NCBI GenBank assembly: GCA_010909165.1
Contig: MU008161.1
Coordinates: 124,001-188,000, forward strand
Direction of reading: 5' to 3'
DNA from: Anthoceros angustus
Lineage: Eukaryota > Plantae > Anthocerotophyta
DNA: 64,000 nucleotides
Notes under the pieces: model-generated
The model's database searches: none
What the model saw: the letters and a program-made list of their open reading frames with translations, nothing else
Told to the model about the DNA's origin: nothing
Part shown: positions 23,378 through 63,800 of the stretch, piece after piece
How positions within the stretch are numbered: the first letter of the stretch is position 1
How the letters are laid out: every line of letters starts with the position of its first letter
Made by a program: the position numbers and the translations under genes

Positions 23378-24487
23378 CTAAACGCTGATGCTCTCGAGAG
23401 CCGGAGCCTTGCGGTCGATTCTCTTGACGATGCCAGCAATGACCTTCCCGGGGCCCAGCTCGTAGCCGCTCTGCAGTCCTTTAGCCAGCAGGGTCTGGAG
23501 AGTGGATTCCCATTGCACTGGCGAGGTCACCTGCTGCGCCAGGATTTTCCGGATGACATCCGGGTCCGAGTGCGGCAGCGCGTCCACATTAGAGATGACG
23601 GGGATGCGCGGCGGCCTGAGCTGCGTGGCGCTCAAGGCGGCCTCCAGCTTGCTCACCGCGGGCTGCATGAAGCGGGTGTGGAACGCCCCGGCCACAGCGA
23701 GCCGCACGGTCATCCTGGCCTTGAACTCCTTGGCCCGGGCCTCCACGGCCTCCACGCCCTTGACGCCCCCGGACACGGCGTAGTTCCCGTTGCAGAGGAA
23801 GTTGGCGATCTGCACGCGCTCCGCCTCCTCCACCTCCTGGTTGGCGGCGTCGCAGAGCTTGGCCACGGTGCTCGCGTCCAGCCCGATGACGCTCACCATA
23901 GCGCTGCGGGAGGCGTCGGCGGCGGCCTGCATGGCCTCGCCGCGGGTCTGCACCAGCTTCACCCCGTCCTCGAAGGAGAAGACCCCGGCGAAGGCCAGCG
24001 CCGTGTACTCCCCGAGGCTGAGCCCGCAGGTCACGTCCACGGCGTGGATCACGGCCTGCCCGCCCTCCCGCGCCCGGAGCGCCTCCACGGCCGCCAGGCT
24101 GCTCACGTAGATGGCCGGCTGGCTCACCACCGTGGAGTCCAGCTTCTCCTTGGGCCCGTTCACGCACACTTCAAGCAGATCGTAGCCCAGGATCTCGCTG
24201 GCCCGGGTGAAGAGCGCGGCCGCGGCCGGCACCGCGTGCGCGTCCTTGCCCATGCCCACTGCCTGCGCCCCCTGGCCCGGGAACAGGAACGCGCTGGTGG
24301 CCTTGTAGTCCGCGAACAGGGAGTCCGAGGACCCCGACGCCGGCGCCTCAACCCCGACCGTCGCGCTCATCCGGACGAGCGGGCCGAATTTTGCCCTCCC
24401 CACCCCGCCGAGCACGGGGCTCCTGCCCACGACCGAGGCCGACGAAGCCGCGCCCAGCTTGCTCCCCATCGCCACAGCGCCTGCCAT
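23378..24487 (-). CDS. MCAT: Plastid malonyl-CoA:ACP transacylase (FabD), intronless, with transit-peptide-like N-terminus
   Basis: 369 aa; AFLFPGQGAQ, SQPAIY, GLSLGEY (active-site Ser), RGEAMQ, IANFLC, VAGAFHT, QVTSPVQW, YELGPGKV. Confidence 0.96.
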   Translation of the reverse strand: MAGAVAMGSKLGAASSASVVGRSPVLGGVGRAKFGPLVRMSATVGVEAPASGSSDSLFADYKATSAFLFPGQGAQAVGMGKDAHAVPAAAALFTRASEILGYDLLEVCVNGPKEKLDSTVVSQPAIYVSSLAAVEALRAREGGQAVIHAVDVTCGLSLGEYTALAFAGVFSFEDGVKLVQTRGEAMQAAADASRSAMVSVIGLDASTVAKLCDAANQEVEEAERVQIANFLCNGNYAVSGGVKGVEAVEARAKEFKARMTVRLAVAGAFHTRFMQPAVSKLEAALSATQLRPPRIPVISNVDALPHSDPDVIRKILAQQVTSPVQWESTLQTLLAKGLQSGYELGPGKVIAGIVKRIDRKAPALESISV

Positions 24488-25632
24488 CGCTGCAAATTCC
24501 TCTTGCGCAAAATGTCACCCCGATTCCAGTGAGACGTCCCGCTCGGCAACGGGAGCAGGAAGCTATGCTGCCCCTTTCCTTTTGCACACCCCGGTGGTTG
24601 GTAGGCTCGCAATGCCGAAGAACCCGAGGCTCCTGACGGGACCTTCTAGTTCTAGCACGCCCGCTCTCTTGTTCGGATTTCATTTCGCTTCCTTTCCTAA
24701 CACAAAATGAGATTGCGCCCACCCTTTCCTTAACCAAATGGAGCTAAATACAACGGGTACCGTAGCTCACCCGCGGGTACGTATTTGGCGTATGTGCAGA
24801 CAGGGGGACGGAGAGTGTTGGAGAATGCTCCAACTGCAAATTGAACTCCGTCTGGACCGGATGCTTCTAAGGGTGCCTAGCCATTCGAGCTATATTACCA
24901 TAACATATTCAAGTGGCAATATGTAACAAGTTTGCCTTTTTTTCCAAGTGGCAATGGATAGGTAATATGTTTGCCTTTTTCCAACCGGTAGGTAATGGTA
25001 ACCATATGTTCCTTCTAGGTAATAAATAATATATTGAAAAGATTTTTAATATTCATTTTTATACATAGTATATCACGTTATATGTTATCTTTATAGATAA
25101 CACGCTGTCGATAACATATATCGAGGGCAAGACTGCTCGTTTGCGAGCAACCTGCACTCGCAAGTCTTGTGCGCTTGGCATATCCGGCCGGACGCTCTTT
25201 ACGGACATCACCGGGGAAATGATCTGTTGCCCTGCAGTAACCCTAACACATGCTGCGCCTGAACTCTGAACTCATGTAAAATTTAGACGACTCCACACCC
25301 TCCTACAAGACACTCCGTGAAAAGCTTCACGACACTCGCAAAACTTGCCAGAAAATCAACGTATGTATTCTACCGACATGCGAGATTTGTCATACCGGTG
25401 AAGGAACCCGCCCATGCGTGCTGGTTGATCACAGAACCCTAGGTTCTACAATACGTCGCCCGCGTCCGTTCCAGGGATCTCGTCTCTCTCGCCCTCGCTC
25501 CGCTGCTCGCCCAAACTTCACGCTTCACAGCCACAGATTGCGCTCGGTTCTTGCCGAGGAAACCTAGCGTCCTGCAAGTGAAGTGTTTCGCGGGTGTGTC
25601 GGGTTGGTGCCTGCGCTTGGAGGTCGGCAACC

Positions 25633-26385
25633 ATGTCAAGACGCTATGATTCCAGGACAACCATCTTCTCCCCCGAGGGGAGACTATATCAGGTGGAGTA
25701 TGCTATGCAGGCCATCAGCAATGCTGGCGCGACCATAGGGATTTTGGCCAAGGACGGGGTGGTTCTGGCTGCGGAGAAGATGGTAACTTCCAAGCTGCTG
25801 GCCACGGCCAAGTCTACCGAGAAGATGTACAAGATCGATGACCATGTAGCCTGCGCAGTGGCCGGGATTATGGCGGACGCTAACATTCTCATCAACACGG
25901 CTAGGTTGCAAGCTCAGCGGTTTACTTACCAGTACCAGGAGCCTATGCCGGTGGAGCAGCTGGTGCAAGCTCTGTGCGACACCAAGCAAGGGTACACACA
26001 GTTTGGGGGTCTGCGGCCCTTCGGTGTCTCGTTTTTGTTTGCAGGTTACGACAAGAATTTCGGCTTCCAGCTGTACATGAGTGATCCGAGTGGCAATTAT
26101 GGAGGCTGGAAGGCTGGTGCAATTGGTGCCAACAACCAGGCTGCACAGTCCATGTTGAAGCAGGACTACAAGGATGACATCACCAGAGAGGAAGCTGTGC
26201 AGCTGGCTTTGAAGATCTTGAGTAAGACCATGGATAGTACCAGTCTGTCGTCCGACAAGCTTGAGGTAGCGGAAGTGAGCTTAAGTCCCGATGGCAGTGT
26301 CAAGTACCAGGTCACCTCAGCTCAGGATTTGAACCAGCTGTTGCTCAAGTATGGCATCACACAGCCACCGTCCGACGACCAGTAG
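25633..26385 (+). CDS. PAC1: 20S proteasome subunit alpha type-4 (alpha3), intronless
   Basis: [50 protein letters not shown]; 250 aa from ATG 25633. Confidence 0.97.
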
Positions 26386-46100: not shown

Positions 46101-48454
46101 TGTAGAAGCTATTGACATTGCAATGCCTTCAACTCTGCGCATGGAGAATGCTAAGTAATCCTTGCATCTTTGAGTAGCATCAGCTGGTAGGGCCTGCCTA
46201 CCACTACCGTGGCTTGAGGCTGAAAAACAGTCTTGATACCTGTGCGAGGCCCATGCGCCCCCTCACCCCTTCCTCCCCACCATCAAGCTTCAATGGCGAC
46301 TGTCAGGTGTAATCTGCTTGTAGGGAAAGTGGACAAAGACGGCAGTAGCAGTTTCTAAGAGGCGAAGTTGGGAGCAAACAACAGGTCTGGATAAGCCATG
46401 AGCTGAAATGCTAGGCAAACACTGACAAGCCAGGTAAGAGCATGAAGGTCCATAGCCCGGCCCAATGCAGCAGACCGTTGTCGCACTGTGACATGTGGTG
46501 CAGCTGTTGCATGAGTGGAAAGCCCATGAGGCATTCCCGTTCCTCTACACTGGGTTCCTCTCATTGTTGGGTCCTGGTGTTGAGGAGCAAGCCGACACCA
46601 TCTCCCCGGTAAGCATAGGAGCTAGGGAAACTCACCAACATGAGTAAAGTCTGGCGGGGCTGGCCTGGGGTGTTGGTGCGGTACCATGGAGGAGGTTTCT
46701 CAGTGGTGCGCACAAGTCGGGCTTGATGATGCCCATCCAGAACTGTGGACAAGCTGAGAGTGGGGTCCCGAGAGGTAGATGCAAGAACCAGTTATAGGAG
46801 AGGTTGCGGGGCCAAGTTAGTCCACCAGTTGCAAAGCTGGTGGGCATAGCTTCCCACTTGGGTAGCATCCAGCAGCAAGGGAGTCCCAACATGTAGCTCT
46901 ACGACAGCCATGTCCTGGCGCACTGGAAGCCGAGTATCCAACTGTGCTGGTGTATTCTCCAGCACATGGCATAACCCAGCTGTGGATCGTGATGTTGAAT
47001 ACACACTAGCATGTAATCTTGCCGTCCCGTAAAAGCCTTGTCAGGGCGCCCCGCAAAACTCCCTATCTGACTGAGAGAAGCCTTGACACTCCTAGCTGGC
47101 CACCACAATGTCGATTGGAGACAACAGCTGAGAAGAGGAGGAGACGGCTCGTGCTTTCTGGAGCGAAGACAACAGGGGCGCGAGGCGGTGCTCTAACTTT
47201 TCTTTAGGAGAGGATTGAGAAGAGGAGGCGCGCGGAGAGTTGGTGAGGAGCTAGAAGGAGAGCATCGACGTGGTGAGGGTGAGCGATTGCTGGAGTTGAG
47301 GAGCTGCCCCTAACACACTGTTGGAGAGGAGTCTGAGGGGACAAGATCGAGTCTGCAGAGGAGAAACCTCGCAACTATCGGCTGTAGCGCCTCTCCCTTT
47401 GCTTACTCTCCTCCCTAGCCTGATAGGTTGCTCTCCCTTACCCTCCAAATTCTACCCTTGCGTGTGCTCCTTTTGTGCAGATGGTGAGAATTGTGAGGAC
47501 GGGTGGTGGCACCCGAACTCAAGGGGATGGGAGAAGTGCACATGCCACATTCCCCAAGTCGAGAGCAAAGGCAAAAGCATCCCATGCTCGAAATTCGACA
47601 CACAGCATTCAAATATCACCATGAGACCTAGACGCTTTCGAACGCTATGCTAAGGAATTGAAGATGGAGTGGTTATATTTGGTGCCTGGATGACACATTT
47701 CAAGCCCAGCGTTGGTTCAAGAGTCTTGTGGCTTGCAAGCCACAAGAGGGAAGCCGTGGTGCCCGCGAGGATGTGGTACAATCAAGTCACCCTTAACGTG
47801 GAAGGTGCGCCATTTCCAGCAAATGTACGTGATACCCGAGGCGCACAAAGGAGGAATCATCCCTAGTTTTCCAAGAATCAAATTCCGAAAGCGGCCATGG
47901 AAATGTTCCTACGACCCAAGGAGGAAAATTGGTCCCCTGGCAACGGCTGGCAAGTATCTATGTTCAAGGAGCGAGAGAAAGTGGAATCTCTTCGCGAAGA
48001 TTTGGTTGGGTCTGATCTGTGCAGCCAGGAAGACCTACAGAGGCAATTCCCACCTTATGATGATCTATGAGATGTCCAAGGGGAAGTTAAATCAGTTTTG
48101 TCTCCACCTTCCTAATGCACTTGTACCATAGGAAGGAAGTTCTGAAGGAGGAGGAACTGGAAGAAGCTAAGATAGAAGCTTCTTTGGTCTGAGTAGTGGA
48201 AGGAGAGCCATCCATGGCAGCAGAGACGAGAGGAGGCAGATGACGCACTTGTGGAAGAGATTCCTCCAACCTCAAGCCCATCAAGATGAAGCTATCGTGC
48301 TCGTCAGAACCAAAATGACAAAGAGAAGGAGAAAGAGCTCTCGGCACCTTCTCCCATGTAGAAGGTAGGAAATATGTCTCCACCACCTACCTCGGGAGGG
48401 CTTCACATTGGTAGGCAGCCACCACCAGCAGGAGAAGGCCCGGTAGGGACCTAC

Positions 48455-50330
48455 GCCCAGGAACAACTACAATCCCTGAAATTGACTGAAGGAAATTCAG
48501 TTCTAGATTTTCTAGAGTCATGGCAAGGCTCCTTAGATTCAGTAATCTCCTCAGGTCTAACAGTGGACAATGAAACACAGGTTATGCACCTCAAAGAGGA
48601 AAAGGCCTGCACCAATCCCTGAGAGCCTTACCTCCCTCTTGGGGCAACTTTATTACTGCACAGACTAGTAGTATGTCAGCTAGTAATCCTTTAAATCTAA
48701 CTACACTAATAAGCAGAATCATGCATGAAGCTAGATTGAGACAAGGTAACAACTCTTCCAGCACCCTTGGAAATACCTCTGCTCTCTTTGTTGGTAGTAA
48801 GAAACGCTGGAATCAAACTAGCAAACCCTCTACTTCCGCTTCTGGAGGAACTCACCGTCCTCCTCCCAATAATCCTGCACATAAGGATAAGACATGTCAC
48901 TATCAAAAAAACTGTCCTCAAAAGACCACCAGTAGAAAAAGCAGGACAAAAGCTGCAGGGACTCACAACCCTCATTTAGCACCAGGTTCAGTTAACACTG
49001 CACAAGCTGGACAAGGCCCTTCCTACGTCTTCACTTCTCTGCCTGGCAACTTGAATTTTGATCAGCCTTTCCAAGATCTGTGGCTCCTTGACAGTGGAGC
49101 AACAGAGCACATGTCACCTAGGAGGGATTGGTTCTTCCAGTATACCTCTTTGCCGGCTCCTCAACCTGTCTACATGAGAGATAGCTCTCCACATATGGCT
49201 GTTGGTAAGGGAGTGGTCAAAGTGCAGCTTCAAATTCATGTAGCTTTCATCAAAGACGTCTTGTACATTCCTGCACAGACACACAAATTGTTGCCAGTTA
49301 CGCACGCCACTAGATCTCCAAACAGCAAGATTACCTTCACACATAAAGGTTGTCAGATCTCCTTTAGACTCGCCTCCAGGAAGTTAGTGCAATTGTTTTA
49401 TCCTTAAAGTGGCAAGTTATTTTATGTGGCTTCAGGCATCCTGCCCGAGTCCCTAAGTACAACGCACACCACACACAGTTTAGTAGCTACAGATGCTACA
49501 ACTACTTTATGGCACTTACGCTTAGCCCACTTACATTTGCAGGGCATGCAGTGGATGTCCACCAAAAATATGGTTTTAGGGTTACCTCCTAAGTTAGGAG
49601 CTTTACCTCGATGTCCTGGCTTTGTCGTAGGCAAGCATGCTAGCCAGCCTTACCCTAGATCACATACCAAAACATCCCGTGTCCTTGAGTTGGTGCATGC
49701 TGACCTTTGTGGACCTATGCAGACAGCAACGTTGTCAGGCAAATTATACATGTTTGTCCTGCTAGATGATTTCAATCACTGGACACACCTTTATTTCCTC
49801 AAACACAAACCCGAGGTTTTCCCTGCTTTCAAAGGCACGTTCCAAGCTTGTCGCAGCAGAACCACTACGGGCGATGTAAGATCAAGATTTTTACTTGACA
49901 ATGCGGAGAGAACCTACAACACCACCTTTTTGAGGACATCTCCTCTACTTGCAGGATCCAACACCAAAAGACAGTCTCATATTCCCACCAACAATTGGGC
50001 AAGGCTGAACGCCGCCATCACTCCATTATAGGTGTTCGCATGCTCTCTTCACCTTGCCGACTCCCCAGTGCCCGTGAGGCGAGGAGAACAGCTGCTTATG
50101 TTTACTATGCCGAGTGTAATTGTTGTTAGCCTTCCACATTTCTTGAGACAAAGCACCTTATGGCGTAAATCGGAAGGGGCAAGGGAAACCAAACGCGTCG
50201 ATAGAACTGGATCTTTGGTACTGACTTATAAGTATGTCCCGCTGGAGATTTGCAAGAAACTAGACCCTTGCTCAATCCCACTTACCTTCATCGGATATGG
50301 GAAGATCTTGCTGCCATAAGTTCAATGCGC
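48455..50330 (+). mobile_element. Ty1/copia fragment: gag C-terminus, protease, GAG-pre, integrase
   Basis: QEQLQSLKLTEGNSV, WLLDSGATEHM, LWHLRLAH, LELVHADLCGPM, YMFVLLDDF, KKLDPCSIPLTFIGY; truncated before RT. Confidence 0.92.
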
Positions 50331-51779
50331 TCTCTGACGGCTAACACAACCGCGCGTTTACATTGGCCAAGAATGGAATCTTTGATGAAACACAATTTCT
50401 TCACCGCTTCCTCCCAAGATCCTCCCACGTGACCAGTACACTTAATCGGCCTCTGCCTTCTTGTTGCGATACGACCCTTTCAGCCGACTCCTATTCGTGT
50501 GTTTCCTAACCTGTAATCCTCAATGACACCCTAGCATCACTCCGGCCGCTTCTTTACCACCAATTTCTGGAGCTAACCCTCCCGATCCTTTCAACACTGA
50601 TTGGCTCTTCGACTTAGACTCGGATTCTGATGGCCCATCGACAGGTGGGGTTGTTGCCCCACTACCCGCGGATGACGACGATGGCCCCTTACCACTCTTT
50701 GATCCTGCCTAGCCACAAAGGGGAATAGGACCCACGATGTTCGCGAGCATGATGGACTTCAACTCTTCTTAAACATTTACCACTAGCGATCTACCGAGGT
50801 CGTAAGCAGAGGGATCCCAAGTGTGGAAATTGCACCATGGTGGATTGGAACAACCACAGTACCTAGATACGTCCGAATGTAACAGAACTTGGGGGCCCGG
50901 ATACTCAACATGGAGCACATTCCAACAGCCTCCACATACAGCCTTTTCCTCCTCCATATGATGGGCATGCATGACTTTGGGCATCTTGCATGATGGTTCT
51001 TGGCCTGGTTTCGCAACCTTGGGCTCATCTTTTCTTATTCACGCACTTTGGGTTGTGACACTATCTTCGGTCCTTCTTCAGCAGCATAATATTTGAAGTA
51101 CGAATATACAAAGCCGCTTAAAAAAAAGCTGGAAAACATGGTGAATCGAATTCCACGATTTCGATTTTTAATTTTCTTGGTGATGGTTCATTCCTCCTTC
51201 CCTACGCAGACGCTACTTTTCACATCGAGTGCACCAAGTTATGGTCGTAGTATGCGAAGGCCCCAATGGTCTTCGCGGTGATATTGAGGCGGGCGCCGTG
51301 ATTTCACACCTACTTGAAAAGCAATACATAGCACTAAAAGCAATAAAAGATTAAAGGAATGTTTTGCCGCGGCATGCGGCGCCTGTAAAGGTTTCGTCGA
51401 CACGCAATGTAACGTAAATTTCCAATAACCTAACTACCAAAATCTTCGACTTGAGTCTCGGTGGGCATTGCCCGACACGCTCGAACACAACACGCTTCGA
51501 GGAGGCGTTGTCGGTCCTCAAGTTGTCGTTCTCCGCATGGCATTCTCCACATCCAAGAGACGAGGAGGACCGCTTTGGGTGTTGTAGTCTGATGGCACAC
51601 CGAGAGTTCTCTGCCGTCACGGATTTGCCCGTTTTCTTTCATCTGCTGAACCCCAAAGTCGCGACTGCAGCTTGCAGTGACCCTTCTCGACAAGCTTAAT
51701 TCCTTTGCCAATTGAGGTGTCCTCGTCGGTGTGGCTCATGATTCAATTCCTCCTCGTCTGGAAGTACCTCATATCCATG

Positions 51780-52400
51780 TATCCTTTGGGGAATGAATTC
51801 ACATCGTTGTCCAAGTCCACAGCGATGCAATTGCGGCCACATAGCAGCTAGGTCATTCCGCCTCGCACACGCATCTAATATCCAATCTCCTTCTTTGGAG
51901 AAGTTGTTGATCATCTTACGCATCAACCCTAATGGCCTCGATAAGCACATACACAGCTTGTCCAATGACATATAAAGAAGCTTCGACAGTTGTGCCAATG
52001 CGCGACCATTGTTGAACGAGCCAAGGGCGGTGTTAGGTAACATTGAAACCTTGTTCTTCTTCTGTAGTTACCCCCACCCTACCGTGATGTACTCGACGGT
52101 ATCATATCCACCTTGATCATTATGCATGTTAGTTTTGTCCCATACTGAAGGAGACCATTCCTCCACGATTGCACCAGCAGCCGCATAGCCTCCCTCACGG
52201 TGTGCGGCTCCTCCACCCCATGCATAACTATCATGCGGATTTCCTCACAACTCGTCATGTCATGGAAAGAGTGAAATCATGCCCATCGTGTTTGGTCCAT
52301 CTTTACATCATGCTTTCCTTGTTGAATCACAGGCACATCCATAACCAATAAAGTGTAATTCCTCTTCCGTAAAACCCTCGGATGTCCAACACATCTCTCG
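51780..52400 (-). pseudogene. Beta-class DNA amino-methyltransferase (N4-cytosine/N6-adenine) domain, frameshifted
   Basis: Motifs in beta-class order on the minus strand: YTLLVMDVP (motif IV-like, ~52331-52355; final aromatic residue not readable); VWDKTNMHNDQGGYDTVEYITVGW (52145-52074); RPLGLMRKMINNFSKEGDWILDACA (motif X/I, 51940-51864); LAA..CGRNCIAVDLD (motif II, ~51850-51808). Confidence 0.78.
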
Positions 52401-53339
52401 CTACCACTTGGTATTTCACGATACACTCCGTGGTTGGAGCGATGAGCATTGCAGGCCTTCTTCCATGTCCATGTCGCTAGGGTCCTTTGTTCGTTCTCCG
52501 GACCCTTCCATGTGTGCACTTCCGGTGTGAAAGCACGGAAGTCCTCGTAGTTTTTCAAATCCGCACATCTTTCACTTCTTTGCACCACCGTCGGTCGGTC
52601 GAAAACCGGTGAAGTGACAATAGGTAGGGTGGGCGGCGCGGCATGCCCTTCCCACCCTACATTATTAACAAAATGGTGGGGAGGCGGGCATGCGCCTCAC
52701 TCAATGAGTCTTAAAACAAATGACACGTACCTTTCCATCGAGCTGTTTGAAGCGGTGCAATAACATCATCCGAAGAGTGCGGGTATTCACGCTAACCATC
52801 TCGAAGGAGTCACATCCTAAGTGTTTCGCCATCGCCACTTGGATGACATGAAGTTTCTTCCAGCATATCACCTCCTTGGACATACCATTCGGTCTAGTAA
52901 ACACAAAACCTTTTCTCACACTAATCAGCATTTTCGACCGTCTCTCGGTGGAATTCCTTGGAAGCTGCCATGGTTTCCTTGCATCTCTTTGGGCTTAACA
53001 AAACGCTTTCCACAGTCTTCACCTCTTCTCCAACTGCGTTTGCCCTTGCTCTTCTTGCTAGTACTGCAACATGTTTGGCCCTTTCGGGAAGTTCCATCGC
53101 CTCCCACTTGGTGAAGATCATCACGTTTTCCCACACCTTTCCCTCCGGTTTGCTATGCATAGTATATGTGTCCGGTTGTCCACTTTGTTTTGCTTGTATT
53201 GCTCATCTTCCCGACCTTCGTCATCCTCTATCAAGCACCTTGTATAAATTGAACTTCCAGTTCATGCTCATTGTCACACCATCCGCTTTGCAATCAAGTT
53301 CATCCACAGATCGACCTTTCGATAAAGTTCATCTTTTTC

Positions 53340-53700
53340 CTCTTGTCCCATTGTGTGTTGTGGTCGATTAACTCGCATCTCCCGTAGAGTTAGCCCGATA
53401 GACATGGGCCTCCATCCATTGGAACCTTGCCTTCCCCGTGATATATCAAGGCTTCATGGCGGCGTAAGTATGATTGCCTCCCCATTACCCCATAATATAC
53501 TTCTTTGCGGAACTTTTCCGGTCTAATGTTTTGATATCCTGCATCGGATGGGTCAATCATACAAAGCAAAGGCGGCACACCTTCTTCAATCGACCCTTGA
53601 GATGGCCGAGCGGTAGTTCGCCCAAGCCTCATCCACTTGACGAACGAGCATACGGGTTAGAAAGCAGGCCCTCAAATTCTCCACTTCAGTCTTTACGGCA
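53340..53700 (-). pseudogene. ParB/Sulfiredoxin-like domain upstream of the methyltransferase (same strand)
   Basis: LVRQVDEAWA; VPPLLCMIDP; YY-x-VMG/GNHTYAAMK; FQWMEAHVY-x-GL..HN. This matches the ParB-N pattern R-x-xD..V..L / Y-x-I-x-GGNH..A; frameshifts are needed. Confidence 0.6.
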
Positions 53701-53899
53701 CCACCTTCTTCGCATGCGAGACTCACGACTTTCTGCAAATAATCCTCATGCATCATAGACGCTTCAGTCTTTCTCCATCTGTTGAGACATGCAATGTTGG
53801 AATCTCATTGTTGTCGGTTTCCCTTGGGGCTTGAACTTTTTCCTGCGTTCCTAAAGGCGTTCCGCACTCCGGGACTGTGCCCACCACCTTCCTCATCAT

Positions 53900-54265
53900 G
53901 CATGCTTTTCCGCTTCTCATGGCCCCGCCTTCCTCCAGCGCAAGCCACAGGTTTTCGTGGGCGCCGGCATCTTGGCGCCCTACCTCCTCACTCGCGTCAG
54001 GCGGCATGCCGGCGCCTCCTCTACATGCAGAGGGCGGCATGCCGGCGCCTCCACCCCTCTCGGGGGCGGGGCGCCTCTCCTCACTCCGGGCGCCGGCATG
54101 CGCCCCCTCTTCCGCCTCCTCATAGGGCGCGGCCAGCGCCCCCTCTCCGCTCAGTATGGGCGCGGCATGCGGCGCCTCCTCGCATCACGTGGCGCGGCAT
54201 GCCGCGCGCCCCCTCTTCCTCCTCCAGTCGGGCGCCGGCATGCGGCGTCCCCGCGCCTCCCCTCT
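53900..54265. repeat. GC-rich degenerate repeat (GCGGCATGC(C)GGCGCC(T)CC units)
   Basis: GCATGC-centred motif repeated about eight times between the chromo-like and ParB-like segments; related motifs at 51368-51382 and 52635-52696. Confidence 0.7.
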
Positions 54266-54659
54266 TCCATGTAGCAGGGACTCCTCCCATGGTGCTTGGA
54301 TGGCGACTTGGAAGGAATCGTAGCAGCTGACCTCCCTCCATCACCCTCGGCCTCCCCATCATCCTCTTCAAATGCCTCCGCATCCCGAATGACCCAGAAC
54401 TCGGAATAGGCCCATCCTCCTCATCGGAAGGTCCGAACTACGCCTCATTGTCTTCTACTTCCGGTCGAAGTTTGGAAGTCCCTGTCTTGTCCTCCTCGGT
54501 GACATCTCTCGATGACGGATAATGGAGCTCGTAATCACCTCACACAAGCACACCAAAATGTTCTCTCACTCATCGTCACAGGCGGCAATGCGTTCGCATC
54601 AATGCAATCAACGCGGTGGCGAATGCTGAATTAAGAAGTGTACTCACATTCTCAGCTCT

Positions 54660-54780
54660 GGCGCTCGAAAAGTCTTGGACAACTCCTTTGGCTCACATTT
54701 CTTCCTGTGCAAACATGCCACTTTCAGAGATACGTGTAATCATCGGCGATGCCGGCAATGCGTCCACTTCATAAGGCCTT
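54660..54780 (-). pseudogene. Chromodomain-like segment upstream of ParB/MTase
   Basis: Composite reading YEVD/RIAGIADDYTYL-x-KW/..EPKELS resembles the chromodomain consensus YEVE-x-I..YLVKW..WEP-x-E; needs about three frame changes. Confidence 0.45.
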
Positions 54781-55594
54781 GAAGTGCAAAGAATCCATGA
54801 TTAGGTCTCGCCCTCCATCCAAAGTTGCCCACAGGACCCATCCTGCCCTTGCCCTCTGGTTTGCCAGTGCACCGTTGAACCCAAAAACCCAAAGCTTCAG
54901 CATCGGCGTCCATAGCACAGTTTCTTCATCCGGCTCCTCCGTTTGTGTCAACAACCATTCCTGCTGCAGAAGCATAGTGTCCTCAAGCTGGTTCATGTGC
55001 CTCTGCAGCTGCACAGTCTCCTCATACGAGTATGGGGAGGGAATTGGATCTGGATTTCCCACCCTCAATCCTTTGGACAAGCCAGACTTCTCTCCACCAC
55101 CAACCGCTGTCTTTGTGGTGCTTGCCTTCGCAGAATTGAGTGACCCGGACTTTGTCCGCCCTTCCTTCCACCTCCACCTTGCTCAATTGGTTGGAAAGCA
55201 TGTCCACCGAGGCGGTAGATGTCGCGGAGGATCAGTTCTCGATTTCGCCTCCTTCTTGCTTTTAGATTTCTTACGCCTCCGGCTTCTCCAACAAGTCTCG
55301 AGTTAGGCCACGCATCGGGGAGGTCCTTCTTACTGCGGCGTCCGCTCGCCATCGTCTGCAGCACCCGCATAAGCATCAAACACGCTCAATCCGGATTAGG
55401 CAAGCACCAATTCTATTTCGGACAAGGAATTTCTCACTGTCGTCCTCGGAAAGGATGGAGAAATGGTGGCGAGTCGGGCAAATTGTTGGGAAAACCACGC
55501 GGCCTCGCTTGAATCGCAGACGCTCCGCGTTGGAAGAGCTCGTTACGCCCGCTTGCGGCTCGGACTGTAGAAGAAGGACTCCAATTAGTTCGGG

Positions 55595-55620
55595 TTTATA
55601 AGGAGGCGGCAAACCCTAAT
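55595..55620 (-). promoter_or_regulatory. Putative promoter: telo-box plus TATA box oriented toward the chromo-ParB-MTase gene
   Basis: AAACCCTAAT at 55611-55620; TTATAAA on the minus strand at 55601-55595. Confidence 0.45.
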
Positions 55621-56849
55621 TTCGCGATCAACAGCGCCCGTGAGGTCCGAGTTATTGTCCTTATCGACTATGTATGGAGGAACAAGTGGAAATATGTGGT
55701 CATGCGTTTCGATGTTCTTTTAACCCATACCCAACATACAGTTCCACACACCCGCGCGTTCGCGATGTCCTTCGCATTATCGATTGCACATCAGTTTGCA
55801 AGGTAGTGTGACTCAACTTCGTGTTTGTTTATCTACGCTGCATGCGGGCAAGCCCAATATGCAATTGGGTAAGTAAGAAAGCGTTTTTCATAACGTTCCA
55901 GATACCCTTTTTTCCCCCGCTATTGATGGCTACCGCCGTTCATTTTAACTCTTTATGGTAGGTGGCATATGCTGGCATATAGTAACATAATAGCACGGGC
56001 CCCTCCATTACTTGAAATCTATTTAGGATTTGGCAATCAAGTGATTTGTCTCTCCACGGCTTCCCCTCTCTGCGGTCAAGTCATGTACCACACACCACCA
56101 CCTTTTATCACACTTGTCGCGGTAGCCGTCGTAACCTTGAGCTACGAGTCCAACACAATGCTCCAGTTCACACACTCAAGACGCGATGTGGGTTTCCGTG
56201 TTATGTGCCCTTTCATTCCTTGACCGATACCACGATTGCTATGTCATTGACAATGTAGATGTGTCAAGAAGCGGAAGATTTGGGCAAAATCAAGATGTTT
56301 CACAGTTCAAAGAGTACACGATCCCTAAGCAGTGAAAAAGCTGGCCTCCGTCTCGCCAGCAAATGCAAAGTCCTTGCCACTCTCCACGCCACAAAGTATG
56401 TATTCTTTGGCCGATAGCTGAGTCGTCGGAGCTGTCGTCTTCGCCCGTCATACTCATTGGCATAGGTTTGTGTTAGTGGCTCGATCCCGGGATGTGCGTG
56501 TTGCAGTCCAGGTGGAGAAGAACTCACTCACGGTCTCGTATAGCTATGTTCCCCGACTTCCGGGAACACGAACCTCTACTCGCCATAGATAGAAGCCCGT
56601 CGGAAGGAGGAAAGTTGGTGTCGGTGCGGGTGGAGGCGTGCGGCGGCGATTGTTCACTACTATTTCCAGCAAGATGCGGGGCCTTGCAGATGAGGACAAT
56701 GTCTTCCAGACACCCCAACCATTGAGAAGTTTGGACCGGGCGATCTGCGTCACTTTCCATCCAAGCCTTTGGCCGATACCTTTCGACCTAGCGATGTGGG
56801 CTTCCGTGTGCGAGCGCCGGCGGTGGTGTGTCTTTGAGGAAAAGTGAAG

Positions 56850-57400
56850 GCGATTCCGTGGGAGAGGATTTCAAAGCCTTGTTGCAACAAATTGTGCATC
56901 CATAAGTTCACAAAAGAAGCTTTTCATGAGCAGCAGTGCAGTTTTACGAGAATGGGCGGGACGAGCAAGAGACATTTACGCAATCGGGCGATTTGCGAGC
57001 CACAACAAGGGACAGTTTTCACTCACCTCATGGGTGATTCCTATGCAATGTTGTTTGAAAGCCTTAGGCGTGTATCTGCATAGGGTCCATGAGTGAGGAG
57101 TTGAGCGGAGGTTATTCGACGCACCATGGGGCTAATAAGGCCAGCCCTCGTGTACAATCCTCCCATGCTTTGGCTGCAATTGCACGGATGGATCGACTTT
57201 CCTTCACTTGGCGGCGCCGAATGTGGAGGTACAATCTACGACACTTTCACGAAGCATGAGGTTTGGATACAATCTGAGTGGAATGGAGTCAAAAGGTGAG
57301 AGCTTTGTGTCGTATGCATATTTCTTGCGGTACGTGGGGTAATTTCAAGCGGGTGAAGATACCCAAGTCAAGCAGTTCTCGACTTGTTCCATATCGTGAG
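56850..57400 (+). mobile_element. N-terminal Cys-rich region of a Sola/CMC-like DNA transposase, frameshifted; catalytic core not seen
   Basis: PCCNKLCIHKF; CLKALGV; HHGANK; FTKHEVWIQ; VSYAYFLR/TWGNFKRVKIPKS/QFSTCSI(C). This is the S..F..W..F..V.IPK..F..C..C pattern that precedes the DDE core in these transposases. Confidence 0.55.
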
Positions 57401-57830
57401 GTTCAAGTTCAACATCAGACACCGATCTTGGAGTTGACCAAGGTAGGCCTCCTCCCGACTATTGTGGTCATGCATGCATGGCATAAAAGCATGTGGAGTA
57501 ATGGAGGAGTTAGCGGCGGATGTCACAGGGCCGCTGCGAATGCTGGTCGGCGGTGATGTCTCGAGTCGCCGGCGCCCGGCACGTTGCTTTATGCGGTAGT
57601 GCGAGACCCTCCACCGCCGCAGAAAAAGGACATGGCGGCACCATATGTCTGTGGTGAAGGGTACTAGCATGGCGCCTCCTCCAAGTGACAAAGGGATGTC
57701 GTAGTGCGGCTTTTGTGCGTGGAGGCTGCAGGATGGTGTGGGTGATTTTAAACCAAGTGGTCACAAAGAGGCCACATTTACCCTCTTTATCGTTGTAGAC
57801 TTGAGATTCGTACCCAAGGGGTGATTTACG

Positions 57831-60800
57831 TGTCAAGACAACCAAAACATAGCCAATCAACCAAACACGAGACTCACCAAACATCTAGCGATTCTGAGAC
57901 CAGGCTACTATCCTAACACACTCGGACACATGGCTATCTTACGCGACCTGTTGCTACCTTAGCAGGCGGACCGGTTGCTATCTTAGCAACCACCCTCTAT
58001 TTTAGCAGTGGGGTCCACCTTGGGATCAGTCTGGCTATTAATAGAAGGTGGGACCCACTTGGGGATCCAAGTGGATAAGGTTGGACACCTCTCTCTTATC
58101 TATCCACAAAGTTAGATCCACCAATCGAGTTAGCCACGTGTCACCTTTTCCACACACTATTTATGGACAACCTAAGCAGCCGGCCCTAACCCTAATCTCT
58201 AAACCTAAACCTAGGACAACTCACGATAAAGGGTTGCACTCACACAAACTACCCCTTTCTCTTGCGGCACTTCTTGAGACTTCCTTGTCTCTCCTCGGCC
58301 TTTCAGCTCACCTTCCAAGCTCCATAGACCTCTCAGGCTCTCACAGCCCCTTGAGGTGCCTCAGCCTCCCCACACTCTCCAAGTCTCCCGAACTCTCTTC
58401 AACTCTCCTTGTTCTCACACCTCACGCCCCATTCAATCTCCACTTTTCCACGACTCCAGCCTCTCCAGTCCTTACAAGGTTCTCATCCAGGCCCTTACAG
58501 CACTTCACCAACTCTCAAAATACTTGTTCACCTCTCCGCAATCATTCCGCCTCATCCACTCACGGATCTTCAACCTCCACTCACGGCTCTCTTCTTCAGA
58601 ACACAAACATCACTTACAGACTTCTCCAGTCCTTCTTACTCCTCTCAAACAGCCAATCAGCAACTCTCCATGTCCGATTCTCCACTTCTCTCACAGTTCA
58701 CTTTTCCTCTCATTTTCCAAACACACAAGCCCACGGGCCTCCAACTCACTTGACTTCCTTGACTTCTCCTCCACACACAGGCTCCCGCCTTGTCTTCTCC
58801 TCACACGGGCTCCCGCCCTCTCTTCTCCCAAACACCCGACCTCCAACACACGAAACTCAAAACACAAGGTGAGTACTAGACTAGTGAAGGGAATGAGGAA
58901 GAGTGGACAGCCTCCCGGCTTCACAACCCCTTCCTCTTGACCTTGGAAACTCCCTCCAAGGAGACCTCAAGGCTCCCTCCCTTGCTTTCCACCACCCTTG
59001 CGGATCGCCACATGGATCTAGGCAACTTGGTGGTCTTCTTGGCTTCTCTGACAAAGAAACAGTGTCTAGACTTACGACTGGATGCACCCCCAAACCCCGT
59101 GCTCACCCAAACACCAAGACCTTAAACCAACATTGCTTACATTTCATCAAGAGGTGCCTCTTATACCCAAGATCGCCCACAAAAGTAGCTTTGCTTGCCA
59201 AAAATACCAATCAGTCTTAGCCTACGTCCTAGAGGCCTATCTCTTAATTCCCCACTAAGAGAAGATAAGATTCTGATCTATACATGGGTCCTTTCTAGTG
59301 GTCACTTACCCTATTATCTCTCCTAGGCCTCCTAGGCCTCCCCATGCTTTCCTCTTGCTCTCCTCCCTCTTGGCTGGTTGGGCAAACTCTCCCACAAAAT
59401 CTCCACCTCCTCGAGTGGACTCCTCCCTCTCTTGTGCTCGCAGATAGTACTCCTCCTCGGTGAGCTCTTGAACCTTGGATGGGTCAGCTGAAAGTCTCCT
59501 CCATAAGAATCCAACCCATAGGTAGGATCCAGTGCCCGTCAAGGCATGGATCAAGTACCTCCATGTTCCCCCCGTTACTTCCCGTTCGGGTATTTCCTGT
59601 GATTTCGCCCAAATAGGTTTTCCGAATTTATCGGAAAATAACTCCGACTTGGTTGCTACCATAGCAACAGGCTCCCGAGTCGGTTGCTGTCATAGCAACA
59701 GGTCCTGTTAGCAACGGCCCTAGCAACCGCGTTAGCAACCGGTCGAGCAGCCAACCCTCCGAGGTTCTGTCCAGGATCAGGACTAGACTCTCTTCCTCCT
59801 ACTAGGCTCTAGTAGACTTTTCTTATTTCCTAACCTACTTCACATTCCAACTCCACACGATTCTCACAACTTAAACACAAAACAAAAAAACACTCCTTTC
59901 AGGGGTCGAGTACCCATGTGGTCACCACATACTCCCTTCTCATTTGTTGGCGTCCCGCCAACTTATTAATACTTCTTCAGCGCCAACCATTGACCTGTTG
60001 GCTAGGGTCCATCAAGTTCGCTTGTATGGATCCATTGTCGAACACTTGCAGCAGGGACCCATCCATCTAAGATGCGCTTCGGGAAGTGCATGTACTTGTC
60101 ATGAACGCCAAGTCCCGAACAACGTACTCTTGTTTTTGCAACTTCGGTCATGCCATTCCTTCCTCTTCTCTTGGGCGTTCATCAGAGGGCTTGTTCCCCT
60201 TCTCCATGTCTGAACAAAGCCTATGAGCCTCTCCAAGCGGCTCTCCTCCACCGTCATCCTCTATGCTCTGGACTCTCAGCGTTGGCACTTCAAACTCAAT
60301 GGGCATGATGGTGAGTGCCCATAGGTGAGGTAGTAGGGGTATTGTGTGGTCACCTTCTCCGCTATCACGCCCACAACGCCGAGTGAAGCTTCCGGTCCCA
60401 ATCGTAGGTGTAGGTGATGATCAACTTGTTGAGGATCCCAAAGCAACCCATTAGCTTTCTCCGTGAGTCCATTCGCCTTGGGGTTGTAGGGGTGGTCTTC
60501 ATGGCTGTTGAAGTACTCCACCATGTGTGAGATCACCTCGTTGATGAAATGGGTACTCACTAACCCGGTTCAGGCACCGTACCTTGTGATGATGTGCTCA
60601 AGCAGAACAGCCACCACATTTGTGTCCACGGGCAAGGCTTGAGCTTCCAACATGCGGGTACAGAGTCCGTTACCGAATATATTGATTGGCTCCCCTTGGT
60701 CTTGGTGAATCGAAGTCAATCCCCACTTCTCAAAGGCGCCAAGGCTAGGATAGGGACCAATGGCCCTTTGTGTGGTCCTGGTTGGCTTCCCAACCCTTTG

Positions 60801-63800
60801 ACATGCACAACGCTTGATGAACTCCCTAGCATCGTGCAAGGTTGGCCACCAATACCACCTCCAAGATCTTCTTACAGTCACGTTGGCGGCATAGTGACCT
60901 CCGGCCTCCTCCTCATGCAAGGCGCGAGAACCCGGTCCTTGACCATCCTTGACCCACAACCTCTCAACTCCATCGGCCCTACCTGCATCCTTGTCTTAAC
61001 AACAGTCGGAGAAGTATAGGAACAACCTCATTCTTGTTGTGAGTCATTGGTATCGACTGTTGCTAAAAATGAAAGACCTCCTCATAGGCACCGCAAAACT
61101 TCTCCCTCCTTCTCATTTGGTGATGTACCTCCGTTTCCAGTCAACTTGGCATTGGGCCTAGCACTCTCCTCATCCTCCTCCAAAAGCTTCATCCGGAAAA
61201 TGATCTTCTTGATCACACTCCACCTTCTCCGTTGAATACACCATCCCAAGGGCTTCCCTTTGCTGTTCTTGTCCTCGATCCCTTCCTTAGCAACCGTAAT
61301 CCGCGCCTTAGCAACCGCTTTTCAGCCATGTTGCCTTAGCAACGGCGGTTGCTCCCTTAGCAACCGGTTGCTGCCGCCTCCACAGTCCCTCCATGAAACC
61401 AAAGCGGTCCACTAGATTGAGGGAGTAAGGATGTCCCTCCTATACTCCTCCTCCTCATCCGACCATGCGATATGTGCAAAAGGAAACTTGTCCAATTTCT
61501 CTCCTTCTTCCTCCAGTCGGATGTTTCTCCGGTGATGTGTATCCTTCCGTTCTTTGTAGGAGTCTCCCACAGAGGTATCCCCGCTCCAACTCAAACACAT
61601 TCGGCCTCCTTTGTCTTGGGGTCCCAATCCATTGGCTTAAAAGCCACTTCTTCCTCCCCAAGTCATCTTGCATCTTGAGCCATACCAGTCCTTCCCAATA
61701 GGATGTCACCGGCGCCTTGTGGATAACCACATAGTCCATGAGATAGGGAATGGTCCCTATGATGGTGGTTACTCCTCGCCTCCCACAGTGCATTTTTGAC
61801 ATGTCACCAATCTCGACCTGGTGGTATGCTCAATGTCCAACCCAAGCTTCCTCGCTATCCTTCCGTCATGATGTTCACCCCGGATCCGATCCAAGGGAAC
61901 CCGCTTGATGACCGCCGATCTCCACTTGCACCGGCCTTGGTCTATCATGGACACTAGGTTGTTGTAGAGTCAGCACCCTTGGTCCCGGCTTGGGCAATCG
62001 CCTCTTCCTCTTGGGTTGCGCTTCTTGCAAGGCCCTCGAACTTGTTGCCCGATTGGTTGTCCTTCAATAGTTGACCAAACGTGATGGCAAATTGCTGATC
62101 CATGATGGCTTGCAAGGTTAAATGGTCCTCGATCGGTCCCTCCTTCTTCCCAACGATCGCGGTTGCTCCCTTAGCAACAACGCGTTGCTTGCTTAGCAAC
62201 GGCGGTTGCTAAGCGAGAGGACTTTCTCCGTGATCTGTGATCAGTTTGTCTTGGTCAATTCCTCCTCTATCATCTCCATGACTTCCGGCGTCCGGTGGAA
62301 ACTCGGGTTTCCTCTCCCTTTTCTTTGGAACTTCTTTTCTCCAAAGATGGCCCCTGTGCGATTCACTCCTTGATTCTTCCTTCTCGGGGTTCTCCTTCTC
62401 AAGTGTCTCCTCCAGATCCGCTCCGGGCTTGGAGTGCTCTCTTGACTTTGTGGTGATTCCACCTCCGTCTCTTTCTTCTTCCGACTTCCTCCTAGCTTTT
62501 CACTCCTAGTGCGCCTGACCATGGCTGCAGCCTCCGTAGTAGTCTCCTGCACCCCCGGTCCATCTAGCTCCCAACACCATGGCTTCCGCATCCTCCCCAA
62601 GCCATAAGGGCATCCTCCACGTGCATGGCGTGCTCCTTGAGGTGCCTGAACCCCCGCCACAGGTGGTTGAGCAATTGAGCGACTTCCTTGGGTTTGGGCA
62701 AGTGACACTCCCGCCACATGACCATGTTGTTTGCCTTGGCAGCCGTCGTAGTCACCATTGGCTGTCTTGGCGATGAGCTATTGCATAATGACCAAAGCCT
62801 CTAGGTAATCGAACCACACCGTTGCTTGGTTAGCAACCACAGGCACTTGGTTGTTACGAATGCCCCATGGAATTTCGCAGCATCGATGGATGGGCGGTCT
62901 TGGGATCTTGTTGTCCTGGAAACCTCCGGATCCGTTCCCTCCGGGCTTGGAGTGCTCTCTTGAGACTTGGTGATTCCACCTCGTCTCTTTCTTCTTCCAT
63001 GACTTCCTCCTAGCTTTTCACTCCTAGTGCGCCTGACCATGGCTGCACTCTCGTAATAGTCTCCCTGCACCCCCGGTCCATCTAGCTCCCGCAACACCAT
63101 GGCTTCCGCATCCTCCCAATAAGGGCATCCTCCACGTGCATGGCCAGCTCCTTGTCTTGCTTGAACTCACATCACATGGTTGAGCAATTGAAACGATCTT
63201 CCGGTTTGGGCAAGTGACACTCCCATGACCATGTTGTTGTTTGCGGTCTTGGCACGGTAGTTCGTAGTCACCATTGGCTCTTGTCGTGGGCGATGGGCTA
63301 TTGCATAATGACCAAAGCCTCTGATTGTAGCCCACACCGTTGCTTGGTTGCAACCACAGGCACTTAGTTTATTCAATGACCCCATGGAATTTAGCAGATG
63401 GATGGGCGGTCTTGAAATCTTGTCCCCAGGAAACCTCCACGGATCGGTAGGTATCCTCCGCCATCCTCTTCCTCCTCCTCGTGGCGAGCATGTGCACCTT
63501 GGCCACATGACAGTTGGACTTGTGTGGCTGGCTGGCCACAAGTGGAACAAAAGCAGGTTAGCCCGAGCCTTTGGATGCGCTCTCCTCTTCTCATGCTCCT
63601 TCACGCGTGAGGTGAAACTTCTCGAATTTGCTCATCATTTCCTCCATCTTCATTTCTTCTTTGTTGCACCTTCTTGACTTCAGCCTCCTTCTTGACTTGT
63701 TCCACTTCCTTCTTGGCACTAGCAACCTCTTGTTTAGCCCTGGCCAGCTCCCTTGATCCTCGAGCCTCTGGTTTCTTCTTAGCGATGTCAACCTTCTTCT

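Follow-up and report, generated by a model that had tools for sequence, protein, structure and literature searches.

The closest described counterpart of the locus analyzed here, a decayed stretch of about 7 kb in the genome of the hornwort Anthoceros angustus, is the Ectocarpus transposon Sola1-1_Ec32, reported in 2025. This 21.5-kb element carries, on the strand opposite to its transposase, a transcribed gene for a 1104-aa protein that combines a ParB-like part with a methyltransferase domain predicted to produce N4-methylcytosine (4mC) or N6-methyladenine (6mA) (PMC12477816). According to the supplement of the same paper, its ends consist of AACCG...CGGTT termini, 282-bp terminal inverted repeats (TIRs), and a 4-bp target-site duplication (TSD), and its transposase has Sola1-1_PPa from Repbase as the best match; similar algal cases are cited there as well (PMC12477816). 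Adenine methyltransferases fused to ParB-helix-turn-helix modules are known in chlorophytes and chytrids (PMC4738411). Enzymes of this general type also occur as host genes. The N4CMT protein of bdelloid rotifers is encoded by a conserved, intron-bearing host gene, has a C-terminal chromodomain and a demonstrated 4mC activity, and has been linked to transposon silencing (PMC8885841). In Marchantia, the host genes DN4MT1a and DN4MT1b encode proteins with a TSPPY motif that are expressed in late spermiogenesis and have been shown to write 4mC (bioRxiv 10.1101/2021.02.12.428880). The hornwort locus lies in a 64,000-nt stretch of contig MU008161.1 (assembly GCA_010909165.1), referred to below as the window, and all coordinates are those of the window.

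The region from about 51.0 to 58.0 kb (Table 1) is best read as what is left of a dead, truncated Sola1-type element, belonging to the group in which a ParB-methyltransferase gene diverges from the transposase gene; we assign this reading a probability of about 0.6. The assignment to the Sola1 family, the former presence of a ParB domain, and the linkage of the two genes in one element are the parts of this reading that we infer. Two coding remnants, one of a methylase and the other of a transposase, diverge from a spacer of 0.5 kb. This layout is the same as in the published Sola1-1_Ec32, where the methylase is encoded opposite to the transposase strand. A preliminary description of this DNA had proposed a novel system, namely, a plant DNA transposon with a chromodomain-ParB-methyltransferase gene divergent from its transposase. 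The observation is partly confirmed, and the interpretation is partly supported in outline: head-to-head remnants are present in a multi-copy element. The claim of novelty falls away, as the design that joins a Sola1 transposon with a ParB-methyltransferase has already been published for Ectocarpus (PMC12477816).

Table 1. Features of the hornwort locus and its surroundings (window coordinates)
Feature	Position	Strand	Basis or remark
Truncated Ty1/copia fragment (gag, protease, integrase)	48362-50430	+	Translations: DSGATEHM protease motif, integrase core
Decayed multi-copy element fragment, approximate extent	51000-58000	both	Logan contigs, CpG profile
Stop-free 123-aa piece holding the putative methylase remnant	51699-52067	-	Translation, Pfam, ESM-Atlas
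Putative C-terminal motif block of a beta-class N6-adenine/N4-cytosine (N6A/N4C) DNA methyltransferase (hPTxKP ... GDxxLD, ruined FxGxG)	51861-51953	-	Pfam, PHROG, ESM-Atlas, tblastn, local profile
LLVMDVPV, motif IV (DPPY) candidate of the preliminary description	52328-52351	-	By eye
ParB-like segment of the preliminary description (SIEEG...RRHEAL)	53447-53593	-	No supporting match
Degenerate 32- to 41-nt repeat block, 67% GC, around the palindrome GCGGCATGCCG	53960-54260	both	Gly/Ala/Arg-rich low complexity in all frames
Short acidic run next to the 67% GC block	54334-54384	-	Translation
TATA-like string TTTATAAGG	55594-55602	+	Between the two divergent remnants
Telo-box AAACCCTAA	55611-55619	+	Between the two divergent remnants
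Putative Sola1-type transposase N-terminal remnant	56838-57553	+	CCNKLCIHKF at 56880, ALCx8W at 57302; stops and one frameshift
Ty3/gypsy integrase fragment	60573-60995	-	Pfam Integrase_H2C2, E = 4e-7

The methylase remnant is contained in a stop-free piece of 123 aa. When approximately 40 stop-free pieces from both strands were compared with Pfam, PHROGs, and NCBIfam, this was the sole stretch that scored. Its residues 44 to 66 match positions 166 to 188 of the 221-position Pfam profile N6_N4_Mtase (PF01555; E = 0.02, 15.3 bits), and three DNA-methyltransferase families of PHROG match the same stretch with E values of 0.03 to 0.15. In a comparison of language-model features in ESM-Atlas, PF01555 accounts for 94 of the 100 nearest clusters (top score, 0.93, with 172 shared features). 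At E values of up to 10, tblastn searches return annotated DNA methylases in 17 of 21 plasmid records and in at least 21 of 37 phage records. The matches come from several unrelated lineages, namely, Aeromonas and Burkholderia plasmids, Salmonella phages of the S102 type, Burkholderia phage Bcep43 (gp10), a Vibrio phage, and a Halorubrum virus. In all five references whose gene coordinates were checked, proteins of 213 to 262 aa, the match falls in the C-terminal third. The reference methylases show the permuted order of the beta class, with DPPY or DLPY near the N terminus and hPTxKP...GDxVLDxxxGSG near the C terminus. A local hidden Markov model (HMM) made from five of them and used unfiltered singles out only the 51699-52067 piece among the 2,025 six-frame pieces of the window (E = 2e-6; next best, E = 3). 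This score is inflated, because the references were themselves chosen via that piece; the Pfam figure is independent.

The alignment to the local HMM covers residues 39 to 69 of the piece (aligned text, CMCLSRPLGLMRKMINNFSKEGDWILDACAR). Specifically, SRPLGLMRKMINNFSKEGDWILDACARRN aligns to the C-terminal S-adenosylmethionine (AdoMet)-binding block hPTxKP ... GDxVLDPFxGSG, with CARRN standing in the place of FxGxG. The AdoMet motif thus reads DACARRN, and ARRN has taken the place of the FxGxG glycines. Judged from these residues, the predicted cofactor site is destroyed, and what is left would be a recognizable remnant with no working site. By eye, DVPV, which precedes motif I by about 145 aa, a plausible distance, is similar to the DLPY of the phage S102/Bcep43-type methylases. 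On a read-through in which the pieces were joined by X, the match to the local HMM does not extend into the N-terminal half. An AlphaFold model of the 123-aa piece is disordered, with a predicted local distance difference test (pLDDT) value of 43, and could not be used as a check. The preliminary description had proposed a beta-class N4C/N6A methyltransferase domain. A weak but specific signal for the C-terminal part of such a domain partly confirms it, and the claim is made because several methods and the context agree, not because of any one score.

In the same piece, residues 65 to 98 (AAMWPQLHRCGLG) draw phmmer matches that look significant, with E values down to 6e-7, to translated clustered regularly interspaced short palindromic repeat (CRISPR) arrays in a metagenome library. 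Such matches are a pitfall for automated annotation.

The transposase remnant is found on the plus strand. Two of its motifs, CCNKLCIHKF and ALCRMHISCGTW (at 56880 and 57302, respectively), which share one strand, resemble CCRLNCIELF and ALCTREYFNRIW, two motifs that follow each other in this order in the Sola1-1_Ec32 transposase. Across the six reading frames of the window, CCxxxC[ILV]xxF is found a single time, with 0.01 occurrences expected. The pattern ALCx8W occurs twice (0.29 expected), and its copy at 57302 is located 140 codons downstream of CCNKLCIHKF. This resemblance is suggestive of a Sola1-type N terminus and agrees in part with the proposal of a Sola/CMC-like transposase N terminus. 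No plus-strand piece between 55.9 and 58.1 kb has a match in Pfam, ESM-Atlas returns nothing for the transposase, and none of the six frames of the window contains the catalytic-core motifs of the Ec32 protein (DGANQ, DN..ENKN, and GHTH..ID). Judging by the translation, approximately 240 codons of a putative transposase N terminus are left, and the copy ends before the core.

The repeat status of the region was assessed with Logan contigs from one DNA run and one RNA run of the same sample. A total of 100 DNA contigs, each 160 to 265 nt long, fall patchily on 51.4 to 57.4 kb, with a likeness of 80 to more than 99% and with substitutions as well as many indels. They cover 51.8 to 53.4, 54.2 to 54.8, 56.0 to 56.2, and 56.8 to 57.4 kb at assembler depths of about 20 to 120. 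The likeness is 99% or higher in 36 contigs, 95 to 99% in 28, 90 to 95% in 26, and under 90% in the remaining 10. Because many short diverged DNA contigs cover the region, it represents a multi-copy family, in which the methylase half and the transposase half are both repeated. The 64-kb window contains no other fragments of the element, and this copy appears to be truncated at both sides. Its left edge is ill defined and lies somewhere between 50.0 and 51.4 kb, and the right edge is marked at 58.0 kb by a drop in the observed-to-expected (o/e) ratio of CpG.

This ratio is approximately 0.9 over 50.0 to 58.0 kb, including both halves of the element. It is 0.1 to 0.5 to the left, in the copia fragment, and changes abruptly at 58.0 kb to 0.3 to 0.6 on the right. 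Such a contrast is unusual in a sequence this decayed and may reflect either recent amplification of a derivative that was already dead or a different methylation. The second option relates to the idea, raised in the preliminary description, of a transposon that marks its own copies. Under this idea, Sola1 elements of land plants would have marked themselves, or in intact copies would still mark themselves, with 4mC or 6mA by means of the ParB-methyltransferase, thereby escaping the CpG decay driven by 5-methylcytosine (5mC), and might be the source of host enzymes such as DN4MT1. The difference between about 0.9 in the fragment and 0.1 to 0.6 in the flanking retroelements is relevant here, but recent amplification of a dead derivative explains CpG retention equally well, and we consider self-marking very improbable.

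The right edge of the fragment coincides exactly with the first of several TAGCAAC clusters. The palindrome GTTGCT-N4-TAGCAAC is found in 7 copies, all of them between 57.95 and 62.85 kb and none elsewhere in the window (0.05 expected). Of the 22 TAGCAAC half-sites of the window, 18 fall within 57944-62840, partly in tandem runs of 12 to 28 nt. Many of these sites read CGGTTGCT or AGCAACCG, which contain AACCG/CGGTT, the reported termini of the Ectocarpus Sola1-1. The clusters may represent terminal or subterminal repeats of Sola1-type or other elements.

The stop codons bear directly on whether any of this could be a gene. Over 1,305 codons of the minus strand (51699-55615), the three frames contain 42, 43, and 54 stops, compared to about 65 expected from the base composition, and the stop density is near random. 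Between the copia and gypsy fragments, the longest open stretch on either strand is 143 codons. A single continuous open reading frame (ORF) for all three proposed domains is not supportable. A live or recently live spliced gene for a protein with a chromodomain, an acidic linker, a ParB domain, and a methyltransferase, its stops being sequencing errors or introns, had been suggested by the order of domains seen by eye and by the TATA-like string and telo-box upstream. That version is effectively refuted. The stops are far above what polishing errors would produce, the diverged contigs also carry many indels, the AdoMet-binding glycines are lost, and neither a chromodomain nor a ParB signal is seen. 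The RNA run from the same sample has no contigs of the region, which is weak evidence in the same direction. With the cofactor motif altered and motif IV undetectable, the working reader-plus-writer gene of the preliminary description is likewise not supported.

The individual parts of that gene fare unequally. Minus-strand pieces from 54.7 to 55.6 kb, searched at E values of up to 1 to 5, give no Pfam match for the chromodomain-like segment. The acidic linker corresponds to a GC-rich block of degenerate repeats, next to which lies the short acidic run listed in Table 1. With up to one mismatch, the palindrome GCGGCATGCCG of this block has 7 copies in 51369-54246, and 5 of these are inside the block. 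Elsewhere, there are a weaker copy at 55837 and two matches with one mismatch, for a window total of 16 strand-matches versus 1.6 expected. The palindrome may be a protein-binding motif specific to the family, or it may be no more than the unit of the repeat. As for the promoter, the two strings exist as described, but AAACCCTA is found twice in the window compared to 1.64 expected, which puts the telo-box at chance frequency.

Several results weigh against the reading of the region as a Sola1-type element with a ParB-methyltransferase gene. The ParB-like segment finds nothing in Pfam, PHROGs, NCBIfam, or ESM-Atlas, and has no tblastn match at E values of up to 10 in 72,556 plasmids. Its single tblastn match among phages is a hypothetical protein of an Erwinia phage, and it is not among the matches of an unfiltered HMM made from five plasmid ParB N-terminal domains. 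In the place that corresponds to the GxRRxxA arginine patch of ParBc (PF02195), the segment reads PEKF. The ParB-like domain of the preliminary description is therefore not recovered as such. In addition, no credible inverted repeat brackets the region, no TIR or TSD is found, and contigs of 160 to 265 nt are too short to link the methylase and transposase halves in other copies. The Sola1-1_Ec32 motifs were picked post hoc, with both sequences in view, and are short patterns only. On the methylase side, the PF01555 score is below the curated cut-off of 26.7 bits. A match of this level to one named family would arise by chance about once per thousand windows, and approximately that many genome windows were surveyed. 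Neither the 123-aa piece nor the X-joined read-through shows a profile match to motif IV with Pfam or the local HMM. Single-sequence searches of phages (E values of up to 1) and PDB and two word-index protein searches reveal no real relative. The word-index searches used queries of 139 and 123 aa under a length filter that leaves out full-length relatives, in a collection that does not include the proteins of this genome. Two metagenome scans give no match. When the 123-aa piece was run with phmmer against 1.84 billion representatives, all 6 matches were rejected as artefacts, and the 4 that were inspected are translated CRISPR-repeat arrays (ASMGPQLYRCGN). The only match in the PDB sequence search, to Cdc45, was dismissed as a chance one.

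Some of these results are what would be expected if the region had no methylase ancestry at all and the signal were a chance resemblance of 25 to 30 residues in an unclassified repeat, picked from very much sequence. The gap between 15.3 bits and the cut-off, the lack of a significant match in single-sequence searches, the pLDDT value, the undetectable remainder of the methylase domain, and the near-random stops all fit this explanation. However, four methods of different basis all point to one family and place the match at its correct C-terminal position, and the match is colinear over two conserved blocks, KP..L...I and EGD.(I/V)LD. Pure chance is accordingly regarded as improbable. Somewhat more credence, although still well short of an even chance, goes to a real methylase remnant of other origin that happens to neighbor an unrelated Sola-like fragment among the debris of transposable elements. 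Its source might be another transposon with accessory genes, such as a giant element of the CMC/EnSpm or KDZ type, an endogenous fragment of a large DNA virus, or a host gene similar to DN4MT1 that became a pseudogene. The surroundings are indeed a mosaic of truncated elements, no TIR or TSD binds the two halves together, N6_N4 methylases are found in giant viruses (structure listing of the Atlas), and the nearest of the weak matches are to small phage and plasmid methylases that stand alone and lack ParB. On the other hand, the methylase and transposase halves are repeated at similar contig depths, the head-to-head layout is that of the published Sola1 design, and the CpG o/e ratio is uniform over both halves, unlike either flank. 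A host pseudogene, in particular, would be single-copy and would not yield many diverged contigs. A separate origin of the methylase is thus considered unlikely.

Under the preferred reading, that of a dead Sola1-type copy, the ancestor would have been a cut-and-paste DNA element present in multiple copies and most likely belonging to Sola1. In its intact relatives, a second gene, divergent from the transposase gene, would encode a ParB-like domain fused to a beta-class PF01555 amino-methyltransferase. Approximately 30 to 50 residues of the AdoMet-binding end of the methylase and about 240 codons of the transposase N terminus would be retained here, with nothing else recognizable. The transposase core and both ends would have been lost, and the fragment would have become lodged between copia and gypsy remains. 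Given these losses and the position of the fragment amid retroelement remains, no gene function is proposed for it. It is probably inert as a gene; at most, it might be a copy carried along passively, or it might be part of a non-autonomous derivative that was mobilized in trans.

The flanks of the region, as far as the 64-kb window reaches, are remains of truncated transposable elements arranged like a mosaic. The translations of the Ty1/copia fragment at 48.4 to 50.4 kb contain no reverse transcriptase. Farther to the right, a tandem duplication of about 518 bp, with blocks 83 to 100% identical, is found at 62420-63425 within a degenerate retroelement region. Two housekeeping genes of the window are single uninterrupted ORFs. 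One of them encodes a malonyl-CoA:ACP transacylase (23378-24487, minus strand; 369 aa, 70% GC), which shows 75 to 78% identity to bryophyte, lycophyte, and seed-plant proteins alike, and the other encodes a proteasome alpha subunit (25594-26385, plus strand). An antisense ORF of 393 aa on the GC-rich transacylase gene is probably a composition artefact.

As a fossil, the fragment carries little weight alone. It adds one more record, if a poor one, of Sola1-type transposons that carry a DNA methylase gene of bacterial type, in this case in a land plant. Such a record could bear on the movement of non-5mC DNA methyltransferases among eukaryotes.

Among the known systems, Sola1-1_Ec32 shares with the hornwort locus a prokaryote-type N4C/N6A methyltransferase domain on the opposite strand, the CCxxxCIxxF and ALCx8W motifs of what is here a putative transposase N terminus, and a multi-copy state in which the Ec32 copies, too, are mostly not intact. 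In contrast to that complete element, approximately 7 kb is left here, with no ends, transposase core, or detectable ParB, and the host is a land plant. The best matches of the methylase remnant, although weak, are Salmonella phage S102 orf7, Burkholderia phage Bcep43 gp10, and methylases from the leading regions of Aeromonas and Burkholderia plasmids, which share the permuted arrangement, motif IV being located toward the N terminus and motif I toward the C terminus. The DLPY of the S102/Bcep43 type comes close, by eye, to the DVPV found here. These phage and plasmid enzymes differ in being prokaryotic proteins of 213 to 262 aa without a ParB fusion, and their identity to the remnant is 25 to 48% over 30 to 60 residues (E = 1 to 9). 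N4CMT of bdelloid rotifers is similar in that it is a PF01555 amino-methyltransferase found in a eukaryote but derived from bacteria, whereas the hornwort sequence would be transposon-borne, is dead, and has no detectable chromodomain. DN4MT1a and DN4MT1b likewise represent prokaryote-like amino-methyltransferases in a land plant but belong to the host.

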